In this document: positions 1,565 through 44,090 of the stretch, one piece after another
Layout: each line of letters starts with the position of its first letter
How positions within the stretch are numbered: position 1 is the first letter of the stretch
NCBI RefSeq assembly: GCF_006345805.1
Contig: NC_043011.1
Span: 64,120,464 to 64,184,463 of the forward strand
Length of the DNA stretch: 64,000 nt
Origin: Octopus sinensis
Taxonomy: Eukaryota
Direction: 5' to 3'
Made by a program: the position numbers and the translations under genes
Notes under the pieces: generated by a model
The model's input: only the letters and a program-made list of their open reading frames with translations
What the model was told of the DNA's origin: nothing
Database searches by the model: none

Positions 1565-1664
1565 GTATGGTGACGGGAGACAATTGTACAAGGAAGGCGA
1601 AACTAGAATGTGATTTTCCTGAAATACTTTTCAAAGATTTCGCTCACGATGATCTATTTTGCAA
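1565..1664 (+). CDS. Six-Cys small-protein paralog 1, exon 2 (GMVTGDNCTRKAKLECDFPEILFKDFAHDDLFCK)
   Basis: ttttag|...|gtatat; 100 nt, phase 1->2, same length, phase and Cys positions as 16702-16801 and 36154-36253. Confidence 0.85.
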
Positions 1665-2988
1665 GTATATATATATAGATAGTTTTTCTATATCTACTTA
1701 TGATTCCGCAATTAATAGCTGAGCAAATAGTCACTGACAAATATGTTGCCTTTCCTTTCACTCTGTGCCTCTGTAAATCATTGTGTCTGGTTTGATAATC
1801 TCTCCAGTCATAGGAATGTATATATATATATATATATATATATATATAAATTTTGAATAATCCGTAACAAGATAATTCATTTATCCATTTCAATAAATAT
1901 ATATATATATATATATATATATATATTTTTTTTTATATGCATGGTTTCATACAACGTATGTACCTATGTATGTATGCATGTAAGTATATCTGTGGGTGTG
2001 TATATTGCATGGAATTTAAGAACATATTCTTGATAACGTTCAAGTATTAAAAAAAGAAAATTTGAAACAAAATTATGAATTGTATATAAAGTTTACAACA
2101 AAGTAAATCTTCAAACTGCGTGTATTCATGTTTACAGGTTATAACTTTTCAAACACTTAGTGCGCTTAGAGAAGTTTTTCATTATAAATTGTGTTGTCTC
2201 CCGTTGGTTAAATTTCTTATAATTTCTTGGTGTTTTTTTTTCCTTTTGTGTTTTATTTTCTTCCTTCATCTTCACACAAATGATTTTAATTTCATAATTG
2301 TACAAGTGTCGAAATATTTATTATAAGCATCATTTCTAAGCAGCATAAATTGTTGCTGATGAAAATAACGTGCAGCTTAAACGTAGAAAATCCCAAGCCT
2401 GCCAACAATTGCAGCTGAAATGTAGGTTGCATTTCACTGGCCAAAGACGGATTGCAATTCCTGGATAAAAATATGTGCACTACCTGTCTGTTGGCAGGAG
2501 TTATAATGCATATTCTCAGGTGCATGTTACCAAGTTGATAGTAAAATGCAGACGGGCGCCCGGATGGATAGTTACGATCTTCGGATGCGAAGAATAGAAA
2601 ACACGAAGAATGTACACGGGTGGAAATTTTCCAGGAGCTATTCAAGTTACGACTCGCAAATATATTCACCACACAGTGTAAAATTAATGGCGGAACTCGA
2701 AGAAAGCCAGCAAAACTACAAAAAGATGGTTGTCTCAATGTGGCAGGTCAGATCCAAAGTAACGCTGGAGCCGTGTGTGCTTGTGCTTAATGATATATTT
2801 GAGAGAGAGTGAGTCTTGAAAATGGGTTGTTTTTGTGAAATTTACCAGTTCATTTACGAAGAGTAACGAGGTCATTATTACTAAAAATATCTCATTTAAA
2901 TCTGACCTATTTCATCTGAGACACACAATTTTCATAAGGCGATTTCATACGCTGTGGTAAAGTAGATAAAAGAATAAATAAATAAATA

Positions 2989-3271
2989 ATTTATTCTTTT
3001 ATCTACTTTACCACCGATTCCTTTGACCACTCCCCTAAGAAAGATAGTTTGCGCCATGCCTACCCCAAAAGGTCCCCAACCACCACCCCTTTAAACCTGC
3101 CGAAATGTATAAATGCCAAAACTACTCTTGTCACCTAGCTTCCTGATGATTTCTTCTGAATGAAACAGTTCTAGTCCTGTAGAGGCTCCTTCTATAAAAT
3201 AAATTAATTTACTCTGCTATCTATTGAATACCTTATTTACTGTGGTTAACCCCGACTCAACCCGGGACCTA
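2989..3271 (+). mobile_element. Penelope-like pseudo-LTR, family A, copy 2
   Basis: Paralog of 1165-1451; its 5' end is duplicated in inverted orientation (2954-2979); hammerhead at 3137-3187. Confidence 0.7.
3137..3187 (+). ncRNA. Type I hammerhead ribozyme motif
   Basis: agcttc-CTGATGA-t ttc ttct gaa t-GAA-ACAG ttctagtc CTGT-A-gaggct; intact core, 4-bp stem III, stem I with one G-U pair. Confidence 0.7.
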
Positions 3272-4357
3272 CATATATATATATATATATATATATATAT
3301 ATATATATATATATATATATATTTATATATACACATATATATTCCTTTACCATTCGATTAGTTAGGAAGAAATTATTCGATAAAATGTAACTCCATTGTT
3401 TTCGTTTATTTTTTGCTCATATTTCGGAATTTACAGAAGTGAAAGATCTTGAAGCCGTAGTTTTCAAATATTTCCAGATGCTAACCCGGCGGGATAGAGG
3501 ATGATCCAATGTGTTTGCTATGATCTCTCTTGAATGTTGCATGGTGGCAAAATTAATTGCTTTTACAATATAATTTTATTTGAGATTTGTTTTGCAGTAT
3601 ATGAGAGTTGGTGTCTTACTGTTCATAACTACAAATATTTGGGAGGAGAAGCCATTTTTAAAACAGAAATTTTATATAGGAACTAGTGTAGAAATGATTG
3701 AAGTCATTGTTACAAATTAAACATTGTTTATCTCCACAGACTTTCAGCAAACAATCTACAGTGTCCCCTTACGTGAATTCTTCCAGCGTGAATAATTTTC
3801 CTTGCGTTTACTGTTTTGTATTAGGTTTTCATATTTTTAATTTTGAGGTTTTTAAGAGTACTGGTAGAGTTCTTTTTATAGTGCGGAATATGTTTATTAT
3901 TTCTGGTTTATATGACTTAAAAAAACAATTAGTTTTTTTCTTTATTTTTTTCTTAGGCATCCTCAGTTAGTATGACGTCCATTTTCGTTGCCTCCGTTTT
4001 CTACATACCATATATATTTAGTTGTATTAAGTTATGTTTGGAAGGTGTTGTGTGACGCCCCCAGAGGATGAAGTAGACTAGCCCAATACGTAGATATAGA
4101 GGGAGAAGTCTAGACGTCAAGAGAGCACAGCTGAGAGTAGCAGTAGGAGAGCTGAGACGAGTTGAGTAGAAGGCATCCGAACGTGCAACATAACAAAAGG
4201 TATCATCACTGCCAGCTTAACATTATATATGAACGCCTCGTTATATATGCAAGAGAGCTGCAGGACATTTTTTTACCCCTTATTAGGTGGAGCATTAGCT
4301 GCTCCATAAACAGTTTGCGAGATGGACAGCATTTGATAGCCTAGTTGGTCACGTGAA

Positions 4358-4930
4358 ATGTATATGCATATATATATATATATATATATATATATATATA
4401 TATATATATATATATATATATATATATATTACTGTGTTTGGGAAGTGTCATTCTCTTTTATAAACTTTTCGTTGCGTCTTGCAACCTCTACAGTCGTCAT
4501 TGGCACTGCCCGTTTTCACAACTGTGATCTTTTAAATATATATATATCTATAAATATATATATATATATATATAATATATATATATATATATATATATAT
4601 ATATATATATATATATATGTATGTATATATATACATATACATATATATATATATATATATATATATATAAATATATATATATATAAGTATAAATATATAT
4701 ATATATATATATAAATATATATATATACATATATATATATATATACATATACATATATATATATATATACATATACATATATATATATATATACATATAT
4801 ATATATATATATAAATATATATATATGTATATATATATATATATAAATATATATATATATATATATATATATATATATATATATATATATATATATATGT
4901 ATGTATGTATTTATGTATGTATGTATGTAT
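4358..4930. repeat. (TA)n-rich microsatellites
   Basis: Long TA/TACA runs interrupted by about 110 bp of unique sequence. Confidence 0.95.
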
Positions 4931-5171
4931 AGGATACCCTGGCGGATAAACGCTACTACACCTCCTTTGCATTTTGCTGAATAAACCAACACCGTTATAG
5001 AATTTAATTGTTCCTAATGAGCGACAGAATAAATTCCTTGTTAACAAATCATAAAACTTCATAAATTGACTTCAAATAGGAGAGATTTCACTTCTGATAT
5101 TAAAAATATTTTGCCAAACATGAAGCTTTTCTGTATTTAAGTTTTTAATACCTACTTACAATGTCTTGCAG

Positions 5172-5262
5172 ACACTTTGACGCGAGTAGTATATGTTTGC
5201 GAACAATAGACCCACAATGTAGTAATTATTTCGATCTCTTCCATAAAATCAAGAAGTGTAAG
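5172..5262 (+). CDS. Paralog 1, exon 3 (HFDASSICLRTIDPQCSNYFDLFHKIKKCK)
   Basis: gtcttgcag|...AAG|gtaaga; 91 nt, phase 2->0; CL-X6-C...KC pattern shared with 17733-17820 and 39066-39153. Confidence 0.85.
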
Positions 5263-42499: not shown

Positions 42500-42665
42500 T
42501 GCATTTTTAAAATTCTCTCACCGTTTATTTCCTCATGTTCCTTTCCGTGGAAAAGCGTAGGCTCGGAACGTTAAATACTTTTTCAACTTCACGAGCGTCA
42601 AAATAAAACACCTGCTTGTTGTTTATACACCTGTCTTCGTCTTTTCTTTTTCTATAAATTTCAAC
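42500..42665 (+). mobile_element. Penelope-like pLTR, family C (degenerate hammerhead)
   Basis: ctttccgtggaaaagcgtaggctcggaacgttaaa, related to 53210-53350 and 53860-53990. Confidence 0.55.
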
Positions 42666-43114
42666 TATATATATATTTGTATATATACATATATATAAAT
42701 ATATATATATATATATATATATATATATATATATATATATATATATATATATATATATATATATATATGTGTGTGTATATTTGTCATGCATGTAAAAGTG
42801 TGTGTGGTTAAATAATAAAGATTATTACCAGTGTAATAAAGTTTAATATCGTGTCTAAAAGTTTCTAGTGATTATAAATAACGTCCTTGATTTTATCTAT
42901 CTATCTGTCCATCCATCTGTTTATTGATTTGTCTCTTTCTCCGTCTCTCGCTGTATATTTATATATATATATATATATATATATATATATATATATATAT
43001 ATATATGAAGAACGGTAGAGAGATAGAGAGACAGAGAGAAAGAGAGGGAGCAATATGATGTAGAGTATCTTTTTGAATACTTGTATCTCAGGAACAAACG
43101 TTTTGCACTTTCAG

Positions 43115-43165
43115 AAATATATGGAGGTCAGTAGATTTGGAGCCTCAGCCACCCGACGAAACATG
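43115..43165 (+). CDS. Paralog 3, exon 4 (KYMEVSRFGASATRRNM)
   Basis: ttttgcactttcag|51 nt|gtccgtaatgccgtta; intron start aligns with paralog 1 gtatgtaataccgtta; an alternative in-frame donor follows 43126. Confidence 0.75.
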
Positions 43166-43582
43166 GTCCGTAATGCCGTTATGTCTAATTATTTGCTATA
43201 ACAATACACGCTTATCTACAAAATAGTTAAATTGTTACAGCTGCAATTGAAATAGCGTCGCAGTAGAGTACCACACCTCTCTTTCACTTGCAGCAATTAT
43301 TATATTACGTAGCTATTATTCTCATAAAAGTAAAACCATTATTTTCTTCAAAAGTAATAGTATAGAGTACAATGCATGTGATACTTCCATGATATTTGCC
43401 CAGTATTTAATGTAAAGCTATTTTCATTGCAATACCATATTTGCATTTATTTTATAAACTATGAATAATATATCACTTGCACAATAGTAATACAGTTCTA
43501 TTATTATAATAGTAAATAAGACGGTGAGCTGGCAGACTTGTTGGCACGTGAGACGTAGTGCTTAGCTGTATATCATCTGCCG

Positions 43583-43800
43583 CTACGTCTTGGTAAATGT
43601 TGTTGGTGGAAGTGCAGGTAAAGGAGTCAATGATATGAGTGAATATACCTGTGAAGATGGTGGTGTTGGAGCAGAAGAAGAAAATGCGGTAGCATGGGTG
43701 GGAGCAGTGGTACGAGCCACGTTTGGCGGTGGGGTTAGAGAAGAAGATTTAGACCTGGAGGTCACGTAGGTTGTAGGCTCGTTTGAAAGAAAGAAAGAGT
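43583..43800 (-). mobile_element. Inverted fragment of the Penelope element at about 41505-41725
   Basis: Reverse complement is >90% identical by eye; preceded by a SINE A head at 43517-43580. Confidence 0.9.
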
Positions 43801-44036
43801 AAAATTGAATATGCTAGAATAGTGTAGTCGCAAATACTTGTAGCAAATATTATATAGAGTCTCATATAAATATAATAAAATGAAAAATGTCTAACGAGAT
43901 ATCATTGTTATATACCTGTTGGTATACATTCAACCGTTAATACAGAAACATTTGTTGTAAATAAACAAAGCAGGTTTACCTGAAGGTCTGTGAAAAACAG
44001 TTGTTTGAATAACACGTGTTCTATTTCTTATTACAG

Positions 44037-44090
44037 GTTAGAATGGATCTACTATTTTCTGCAGTACTCCTTTATAAGTTGATACAATAA
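44037..44090 (+). CDS. Paralog 3, terminal exon 5 (VRMDLLFSAVLLYKLIQ*)
   Basis: gttctatttcttattacag acceptor; 17 aa + TAA. Confidence 0.88.
   Translation, partial: VRMDLLFSAVLLYKLIQ

Follow-up and report, generated by a model that had tools for sequence, protein, structure and literature searches.

RGM_N, the N-terminal domain of the repulsive guidance molecules (RGMs), binds BMP/GDF ligands, and Ly6/uPAR proteins have 8-10 cysteines and a three-finger fold of the beta-sheet type. The RGM N-domain, carried on a GPI-anchored protein, forms a bundle of three helices and contains three disulfides; in RGMB, an Arg next to Cys5 inserts between the fingers of GDF5 (PMC7354924). For both O. vulgaris and H. 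maculosa, a third described protein, NP2, has been reported from the posterior salivary glands, its proteomic support being a single peptide (PMC7693380). We analyzed a 64,000-nt window of one Octopus sinensis chromosome and found four genes of a family that is large, evolves fast and is restricted to octopuses; its proteins have ~105 residues each. Like Ly6/uPAR proteins, these are small (~100 residues) and cysteine-rich, with a signal peptide and a GPI-type end, and in both cases the genes evolve fast and lie, often for Ly6/uPAR, in tandem clusters. Unlike Ly6/uPAR, the octopus family is predicted to be all-helical, has six cysteines and gives no Pfam match to Ly6/uPAR. The genes also follow the evolutionary pattern of conotoxin-type venom superfamilies, expanding in tandem and combining a conserved signal-peptide exon and cysteine framework with a mature region that changes fast. 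The likeness is one of pattern only: there is no relation in sequence or fold, and the octopus products are larger, helical and keep a conserved C-terminal hydrophobic tail.

Gene content of the window

The preliminary description proposed three plus-strand genes, P1 to P3, whose exon coordinates, GT-AG sites, phases (1,2,0,0) and peptides were all reproduced. All peptide pieces were found on the plus strand of the window, and for P2 and P3, the genes complete within it, a splice-aware search returned exactly one exon set each. The exons measure 37/100/88-91/39-51/54 nt and their internal boundaries are AG...GT throughout, with polypyrimidine tracts and gtaag/gtatg-type donors. A fourth gene, P4, had been missed on the minus strand (45923-55788), so that the count of three must be raised to four in the window and to at least 50 domain copies on the chromosome.

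The first exon of P1 (MRIYSFICLLVV), described as lacking from the window, was located 3.4 kb upstream of it (-3465 to -3429, plus strand). Exon 2 (1565-1664) encodes predicted helix 1 and the loop of the cysteine domain with Cys1-Cys3, exon 3 (5172-5262, 91 nt) Cys4-Cys6, exon 4 (8383-8421) the polar linker ITPGTKSSITRNK and exon 5 (8934-8987) the hydrophobic tail VRTEMILATAVVCKLSN and the stop; an orthologous exon 5 is present in O. bimaculoides. P2, also on the plus strand, begins with the signal peptide MKLYIFFPFVLI (exon 1, 12185-12221, 92% identical to its orthologue) and continues with exon 2 (16702-16801), exon 3 (17733-17820), the linker NSGQLNAQHISNK (exon 4, 21696-21734) and the tail with the stop (exon 5, 22642-22695). 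Its exon 2 encodes Phe in place of Cys1 (TTT vs TGT in O. bimaculoides), which leaves P2 with an odd number of cysteines. The proposed core C-x7-C-x16-C-x8-C-x7-C-x11/12-C thus holds for P1 and P3 and fails at the first position of P2, in which five cysteines were counted instead of the six announced. In P3 (plus strand), the signal peptide MLIYIFLSFLIV (exon 1, 31095-31131) is followed by exon 2 (36154-36253), for which a second, in-frame acceptor exists at 36148, the upstream acceptor being chosen in NCBI's O. bimaculoides model. Exon 3 of P3 (39066-39153) and its O. bimaculoides counterpart are 93% identical; O. bimaculoides isoform X2 skips the linker exon 4 (43115-43165), and exon 5 (44037-44090) encodes the tail VRMDLLFSAVLLYKLIQ and the stop. 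P4 consists, on the minus strand, of the signal peptide MKIYIFLAFLIC (exon 1, 55752-55788), exon 2 (50136-50235), exon 3 (48268-48355), exon 4 encoding HSGVGTVQKK (47125-47154), which is kept in the paralogues P5, P6 and P7, and exon 5 with DMMELLFSIAVTSYLMRYI and the stop (45923-45982). P3 exon 4 recurs as an orphan plus-strand copy at 57527-57577, also missed before, with its AG/GT intact; it lies within a duplicated block (57501-57955) and has no exon-5 copy downstream.

When exons were required to be AG/GT-flanked, open, cysteine-spaced and of the right length and phase, the window contained four of exon-2 type and four of exon-3 type; first-order Markov random windows gave expectations of 0.08 and 0.06, respectively, with a maximum of 1. 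The window genes are real multi-exon genes encoding small cysteine-stabilised proteins that are predicted to be secreted.

Conservation and extent of the family

The syntenic locus of O. bimaculoides carries the same four genes with equal order, orientation, exon lengths and phases. The family had been called hidden, which is true of the P1 and P2 orthologues, not called as genes in the NCBI annotation of O. bimaculoides; those of P3 and P4 do carry annotations (XP_052830368.1/XP_052830370.1 and A0A0L8HFY8, under the NCBI label "uncharacterized protein") and NP2 has long been known. Exon identity between the two species (87-93%) slightly exceeds intron identity (80-87%), and dN/dS is 1.01 for the pooled genes at a dS of 0.17, reaching 1.15 for P2 and 1.47 for P4. 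Such values, together with the lost Cys1 of P2, the uncalled P1 and P2 orthologues and the orphan exon copy, could mean that some or all copies in the window, and P2 in particular, are duplicates that decay or drift neutrally and no longer make a functional protein. We consider this very unlikely. None of the four frames contains a stop in either species, neither species has lost a splice site, and the only indels are two of 3 nt each. In neutral simulations, the probability of no premature stop was 0.013 and that of losing at most 1 of 15 cysteines was 0.021. Moreover, paralogues are only ~25-30% identical, yet retain the cysteine framework and the exon structure. Frames, splice sites and cysteines are conserved beyond neutral drift despite a dN/dS of ~1, a value that is compatible with weak constraint too. 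In the comparison of P4, P5 and P7, exons 1, 4 and 5 are nearly identical and the core is divergent; across paralogues and species, the helix surfaces change fast, and what is retained is the scaffold of cysteines together with the signal and tail exons.

At least 50 domain-encoding exons of the family are spread over ~4 Mb of this chromosome. The 264 kb surrounding the window contain at least 14 members, and no fewer than 39 additional exon-2-type matches at E <= 0.1 fall between 63.03 and 66.98 Mb. A search of 1.84 billion representatives with the family profile gave 31 matches; those whose source was looked up included none outside Octopus. The suggestion of a lineage-specific tandem family is borne out by the array and by these matches.

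The profile also recovered NP2 of Octopus kaurna (B6Z1Y9), which is a family member, and its O. sinensis orthologue (LOC115219848) is on the same chromosome, ~1.06 Mb upstream of the window. NP2 shares the cysteine framework and the helical domain of the window proteins. With a tail-less relative documented in salivary glands, and with a conserved signal exon joined to a fast-changing mature core as in toxin gene families, the products of the window genes might themselves be venom components secreted by the salivary gland and not surface proteins, the tail being a propeptide or a mature amphipathic helix. This is unlikely in our view: NP2 shares only ~16-25% identity with the window proteins and, unlike them, is composed of two tandem domains in 147 residues with neither linker nor tail exon; documented salivary-gland expression concerns NP2 (PMC7693380), not the window genes, and comes with the single-peptide proteomics mentioned above. 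A terminal hydrophobic tail, present in most members, would also be superfluous for a soluble toxin.

Predicted fold and similarity to RGM_N

AlphaFold2 (AF2) predicted three helices for the core. The full-length model was all-helical with a pLDDT of 84 (88-97 in the core), as was the core-only model, which reached a pLDDT of 95 with only one of five models confident. A helical fold distinct from Ly6/three-finger proteins and OBPs had been anticipated, and it agrees with these models and with the lack of Pfam matches to those families. The loose resemblance to DUF19 gave no match; the sole recurring similarity was to RGM_N. This Pfam model (PF06535) matched 20 of 45 family domains at E < 1, other families matching at most one domain each, and the four-repeat relative P0009 scored 37.9 bits against a cut-off of 24.2 bits. 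For the window proteins no Pfam model fitted: P1-P3 had no RGM_N match and P4 stayed under threshold (13.3 bits, E 0.1). Among 177,635 PDB sequences, the five best matches of the family profile were N-domains of RGMB, RGMC and RGMA (E 0.013-0.31). Alignment of the family with RGM_N by hhalign (P = 1.4e-4, 53% probability) was restricted to 32 central columns; its score of 22.4 compares with 10.1 +/- 2.2 in cysteine-fixed shuffles (~5.6 SD), none of 200 reaching 22.4. Judged from sequence, the domain appears to resemble distantly the BMP-binding N-terminal domain of RGMs.

The comparison with RGMA, RGMB and RGMC/hemojuvelin (PDB 4UHY, 4UHZ, 4UI0, 4UI1) extends to a size of ~60-70 residues with six cysteines and three helices (predicted for the octopus family), to the central motif D-x2-[FY]C-x2-L-x5-C-x7-C with identical C-x8-C-x7-C spacing, and to a domain that directly follows the signal peptide in a protein with a GPI-type end. 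Unlike in RGMs, the octopus domain stands alone or, in some relatives, as tandem repeats, and the RGM_C domain and the GDPH autocleavage site are absent. The Arg adjoining Cys5 in RGMB is not conserved in the family. The outer cysteine spacings also differ (C-x7-C-x16 and x11 in the family, C-x4-C-x22 and x22 in RGM); the bona fide RGM gene of the octopus is on a different chromosome and its outer spacings are likewise unlike the family's. Searching PDB with both AF2 models by Foldseek gave nothing significant (best E 3.5) and no RGM structure. These differences, with an alignment confined to the central segment and no relatives found outside Octopus, leave room for a convergent origin, in which an independent, octopus-born helical cysteine-rich fold would share neither ancestry nor ligand class with RGM. 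We regard convergence as a serious possibility but hold it to be somewhat doubtful, as RGM is the only recurring Pfam signal and the top PDB signal, stands well above the cysteine-fixed shuffles, and has the same setting, with three helices, enough cysteines for three disulfides and a tail of GPI-like character.

The C-terminal tail and probable surface display

In most family members, a polar linker rich in S/G/A/N precedes a hydrophobic stretch of 9-16 residues at the extreme C-terminus, and some relatives have classical GPI-like ends, e.g. ...NAPSSTRLESLRILLLLLIISVLL. The GPI anchor proposed earlier fits this pattern and the small residues that each of the four window proteins has 20-27 positions before its C-terminus; it fits less well the window tails themselves, which have only 9-12 hydrophobic residues with K/R near the C-terminus, and isoform X2, in which the presumed omega-site (linker) exon is removed and the tail joined directly to the core. 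Exons 4-5 of P4, P5 and P7 differ at 0-2 positions, and such strong tail conservation among paralogues is not usual in a GPI signal that is cleaved off and counts against one. AF2 draws the tail as the continuation of a long helix (pLDDT 58-70). The tail could instead be inserted in the membrane, or form a fourth helix, either packed against the bundle or serving in oligomerisation. We find this rather unlikely given the small residues and the GPI-like ends of relatives, and 9-12 uncharged residues are too short for a transmembrane tail. From their sequences, the window proteins are probably membrane-tethered.

Combined, these results favor, with a probability of about 0.6, a tandem array of predicted secreted, probably surface-displayed three-helix domains that are closest to RGM_N. 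Exon 1 (37 nt) would provide a short signal peptide, and exons 2 and 3 a domain of ~60 residues (C-x7-C-x16-C-x8-C-x7-C-x11-C) predicted to fold as a three-helix bundle with three disulfides; exon 4 would add a short polar linker with many small residues, and exon 5 would end the protein with a short hydrophobic tail. Most likely, the product enters the secretory pathway and would then be displayed at the cell surface, probably held by GPI anchoring at the small-residue linker, or be shed. It would serve as a small extracellular binding module.

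Four genes of one exon plan in the window

The preliminary description had placed three genes for six-cysteine proteins, P1, P2 and P3, on the + strand of the window, and all of its peptide pieces were located where it had put them. By splice-aware enumeration, exactly one exon set was obtained for each of the complete genes, P2 (exons 1-5 at 12185-12221, 16702-16801, 17733-17820, 21696-21734 and 22642-22695; +) and P3 (exons 1-5 at 31095-31131, 36154-36253, 39066-39153, 43115-43165 and 44037-44090; +). Exons 2-5 of P1 are at 1565-1664, 5172-5262, 8383-8421 and 8934-8987 (+); its exon 1 (MRIYSFICLLVV) falls outside the window, 3.4 kb upstream. 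The claimed exon lengths and phases (1,2,0,0) were reproduced and the GT-AG boundaries were confirmed, every acceptor showing a polypyrimidine tract and C/TAG and the donors being of the gtaag or gtatg type. We judge these genes to be real and correctly built. Two points had to be revised. First, the window carries four genes rather than three: P4 lies on the minus strand (exons 1-5 at 55788-55752, 50235-50136, 48355-48268, 47154-47125 and 45982-45923) and encodes a product of 104 aa, MKIYIFLAFLICGVEMKHSC...DMMELLFSIAVTSYLMRYI; its exon 4 (30 nt, HSGVGTVQKK) was found again in three further paralogues. Second, P2 encodes five cysteines rather than six, the first being replaced by Phe (TTT; TGT in the O. 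bimaculoides orthologue). Among the copies, P2 is the one most likely to be decaying. Family-type exons (AG/GT-flanked, open, in the correct phase and with the cysteine spacing) numbered 4+4 in the window, against 0.08 and 0.06 for the same exon types in first-order Markov random windows.

P3 exon 2 has two in-frame acceptors in tandem, 6 nt apart (36148/36154); the upstream one is chosen in NCBI's O. bimaculoides P3 model and lengthens the signal peptide at its end by Val-Ser. P3 exon 4 also has an orphan copy at 57527-57577, with AG/GT intact and one amino-acid change, in a block (57501-57955) that is 94% identical to 43089-43388; no exon-5 copy was found downstream of it. This orphan was probably left behind when a segmental duplication gave rise to the minus-strand series formed by P4 and its neighbouring paralogues outside the window, P5, P6 and P7.

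Compared with O. bimaculoides, introns and intergenic stretches are bloated, in large part by retrotransposon fragments, and because of these pieces the window genes have 2-2.5 times the length seen in that species. Degenerate non-LTR retrotransposon pieces lie at 25953-28871 (-), with an Exo_endo_phos_2 match at 28162-28578 (E 2.9e-11), at 60920-63312 (+), with an RVT_1 match at 62019-62654 (E 6.5e-7), and at 18759-19970 (+). P2 intron 3 contains an ORF of 403 aa with a CCHC knuckle and no Pfam match. An inverted repeat of 206 nt, 95% complementary (41507-41712 and 43593-43798), has P3 exon 4 together with a microsatellite between its arms and may represent either the ends of a transposon or an inverted duplication. 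Long TA/CA-type microsatellites are found at 1-1100, ~4500-5070, 22900-23700 and 33270-33670. Microsatellite pseudo-ORFs, rich in C, V, Y and I and up to 300 aa long in all frames, fit cysteine-spacing patterns by chance and thus produce false positives in motif scans; matches to the cysteine motif within the 1-1100 microsatellite were discarded as low-complexity artefacts.

A large family in Octopus and its mosaic evolution

At least 14 members are present within 264 kb around the window, arranged as an upstream + strand series running through P1, P2 and P3, followed by the minus-strand genes P4, P5, P6 and P7 and, beyond these, two more + strand genes. A whole-genome exon-level search returned at least 39 additional exon-2-type matches (E <= 0.1) on the same chromosome at 63.03-66.98 Mb; copy counts based on such matches are lower bounds. 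When a profile of the window and neighbouring exons was run against 1.84 billion representatives, 31 proteins were recovered at E <= 1e-3. Wherever the source could be traced it was Octopus (O. bimaculoides, O. vulgaris, O. sinensis or O. kaurna), the names were 'uncharacterized' or 'hypothetical' in nearly all cases, and relatives with 2, 3, 4 and ~8 tandem domains are present among the family proteins. P3 used alone as the query of a word-indexed protein search matched solely its O. bimaculoides orthologue, and the exact P2, P3 and P4 sequences were absent from the protein collection searched. The family is indeed lineage-specific, as had been proposed, being restricted to Octopus as far as databases show; it evolves fast and is far bigger than first stated.

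A second cluster of family-type exons was seen on another chromosome (G000:C6, 28.0-28.75 Mb) and probably includes the multi-repeat relatives of O. bimaculoides LOC128248155 (~8 tandem domains). Duplicated copies are also found on the unplaced contigs C13346, C13508 and C11551. In O. vulgaris, the hypothetical protein P0004 (CAI97..., 161 aa) is a chimera that joins exon 3 of a minus-strand paralogue to exon 2 of the next one, which suggests that annotation of the family in this genome is faulty.

The syntenic O. bimaculoides locus (CM046618.1:49.73 Mb) carries all four genes in the order and orientation of the window; their GT-AG sites, phases and exon lengths are the same, and together they take up less than half of the space that the window genes occupy. 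The P3 orthologue is LOC128249866 in the NCBI annotation, with an isoform X1 of 108 aa and an isoform X2 of 92 aa that lacks exon 4, and the P4 orthologue is a called gene corresponding to A0A0L8HFY8. At positions 3674-9228 of the locus interval (CM046618.1:49731053-49756185), the P2 orthologue and the in-locus 3' exons of the P1 orthologue are intact, and neither gene is among those called there in the O. bimaculoides annotation. The claim that the family was hidden thus holds for the orthologues of P1 and P2 but not for those of P3 and P4, which were already annotated.

Exons are 87-93% identical to O. bimaculoides, only slightly above the alignable introns (80-87%). Nei-Gojobori dN/dS between the two species was 1.15 for P2, 0.66 for P3 and 1.47 for P4, with a pooled value of 1.01 at dS 0.17, and the substitution rates look almost neutral. 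Drift alone is insufficient to account for these genes, because open frames, cysteines and splicing have all been kept. When the observed number of differences was placed randomly, only 1.3% of simulations were free of premature stops and only 2.1% lost at most 1 of the 15 cysteines. The only indels between the species are two of 3 nt each, all splice sites are preserved in the window and in O. bimaculoides, and the cysteine framework and exon plan persist in paralogues that are just 25-30% identical. A comparison of window positions 45400-56800 with the minus-strand loci at +63.7 to +121.9 kb of G000:C15 (L016-L021) revealed a mosaic. In P4, P5 and P7, exons 1, 4 and 5 show 0-2 differences over 127 nt and the flanking introns are ~91% identical; the block formed by exon 2, intron 2 and exon 3 is merely 68-85% identical. 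P4 and P6 are ~90% identical throughout. The mosaic points to recombination among subtypes or to gene conversion, and in our reading a conserved cysteine scaffold, signal and tail surround a fast-changing surface.

A predicted helical core resembling RGM_N

With the family alignment, AlphaFold2 modelled full-length P3 at a pLDDT of 84 (core 88-97) and the core alone at 95.1 (one confident model out of five), with core helices predicted at 2-12, (16-19), 26-40 and 46-58. Both models are all-helical (three main helices plus a short turn) and agree with the helical fold suggested in the preliminary description; the six cysteine columns are invariant in a 44-domain alignment. No significant Pfam match was obtained for the four window proteins. 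Ly6/uPAR proteins have a beta-rich three-finger fold with 8-10 cysteines. The family had been set apart from these and from the OBP pattern, and both readings were rejected here, the first on the all-helical prediction and the lack of a UPAR_LY6 Pfam match at E <= 10, the second because no match was obtained and the predicted fold is helical. The supposed likeness to DUF19 was abandoned, as neither the window proteins nor any of 45 isolated domains had a DUF19 match in Pfam.

The one Pfam family matched by more than one of these domains was RGM_N (PF06535), the N-terminal domain of repulsive guidance molecules, which was matched by 20 of the 45 at E < 1 (best 6.6e-4). The four-repeat relative P0009, with 37.9 bits summed over its repeats, was the only relative to pass the gathering score of 24.2; the window proteins fell below it, P4 with 13.3 bits (E 0.1) and P1-P3 with no match. 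In an hmmsearch of the family profile against all PDB sequences, the N-domains of RGMB, RGMC and RGMA made up the top five (E 0.013-0.31). Alignment by hhalign to RGMB, RGMA and octopus RGM gave P = 1.4e-4 and a probability of 41-53% over only 31-32 central columns; the score of 22.4 compares with 10.1 +/- 2.2 after shuffling of the RGM columns with the cysteines fixed, and was reached in none of 200 shuffles. A Foldseek search of PDB returned no RGM chain for either AlphaFold2 model (best E 3.5-3.7), small helical bundles being a weak case for such a search, and the best matches of the full-length model were retroviral matrix proteins at E > 3, which are not meaningful.

The RGM N-domain is a three-helix bundle with three disulfides; the proteins that carry it are GPI-anchored co-receptors, and its ligands belong to the BMP/GDF group (PMC7354924). 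Six cysteines and three predicted helices are seen in the octopus family too. The cysteine spacing differs, being C-x7-C-x16-C-x8-C-x7-C-x11-C in the family and C-x4-C-x22/23-C-x8-C-x7-C-x22-C in human RGMA/B and octopus RGM, so that agreement is limited to the central C-x8-C-x7-C. The Arg beside Cys5 that RGMB inserts between the GDF5 fingers (PMC7354924) is not conserved in the family alignment. Full-length RGMs also have RGM_C and a GDPH autocleavage site, whereas the family proteins lack both and stop ~30 residues past Cys6. An ordinary octopus RGM gene exists separately (G000:C2:164242613-164242819; human RGMB match E 4e-22) and carries its N-domain and FGDPHLRTF autocleavage site within one exon. 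Because the window proteins are sub-threshold, the spacing differs, RGM_C and GDPH are absent and Foldseek gave no match, we name the family RGM_N-like and do not file it as a member. In our estimate, the domain would be homologous to RGM_N with a probability of roughly 55%.

Probable membrane attachment, NP2 and significance of the family

GPI-attachment signals usually consist of a polar stretch followed by terminal hydrophobic residues. In most family members, 27-37 residues follow Cys6, and most show an S/G/A/N-rich polar stretch and then an uncharged, mostly hydrophobic run of 9-16 residues that stops no more than 4 residues short of the C-terminus; in some relatives this end looks textbook-like (for example ...NAPSSTRLESLRILLLLLIISVLL). 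At the N-terminus, inspection identified the hydrophobic exon-1 peptide, 12-13 residues long with G (or VSG) at its end, as a putative signal peptide. The small-residue, polar and hydrophobic layout on which the GPI proposal was built is present in 4 of 4 window proteins, but their uncharged stretch is only 9-12 residues long, compared with 12-16 in relatives, and K or R occurs three to four residues before the end, making the window genes the weakest cases in the family. Also against an anchor, paralogues differ unusually little in the tail exon, and the linker exon is absent from O. bimaculoides isoform X2. A GPI anchor may reasonably be supposed for the four window proteins, at about even odds.

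The wider family includes NP2 of Octopus kaurna (B6Z1Y9), which has two domains and no tail and was matched at E 6.7e-29 by the wider family profile; the NP2 orthologue cluster P0028/P0036 was matched at E 9.8e-5 by the profile from the window and neighbouring genes. The six-cysteine framework is common to NP2-type proteins and the window family, and the O. sinensis NP2 orthologue lies on the same chromosome, 1.06 Mb upstream of the window. A proteomics paper (PMC7693380) reported NP2, on one peptide, from the posterior salivary glands of O. vulgaris and H. maculosa and gave its function as unknown. No paper was found on this family or on its RGM resemblance, NP2 alone being mentioned. Through NP2 the wider family, though not the window genes, is tied to the venom gland.

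Taken together, the family is best seen as an RGM_N-like three-helix cysteine domain that stands alone and carries a probable membrane-anchor signal, and its putative role is most likely that of an extracellular binding module, surface-tethered or shed. On one chromosome, at least 50 domain copies are spread over ~4 Mb, and multi-repeat proteins exist beside them. It appears rather improbable that octopuses turned a BMP/GDF-binding RGM module into a stand-alone, GPI-anchored or secreted one, at least 50 copies of which, over ~4 Mb, would serve as putative TGF-beta-superfamily co-receptors, traps or mimics, with the NP2 branch recruited to venom.

Even without the RGM_N link, dozens of 'uncharacterized LOC' Octopus genes and NP2 gain a name and a framework, and annotation pipelines are seen to miss some copies (the P1 and P2 orthologues). 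The family also provides a clean case of mosaic evolution, with one functional part per exon, signal and tail exons that are kept and a core that changes fast. If the link to RGM_N is true, RGM_N would here show its first large lineage-specific radiation outside the canonical RGM architecture, and octopuses would have gained a variable set of small modules, secreted or on the surface, with the potential to modulate signalling of the BMP/GDF type or of other kinds.
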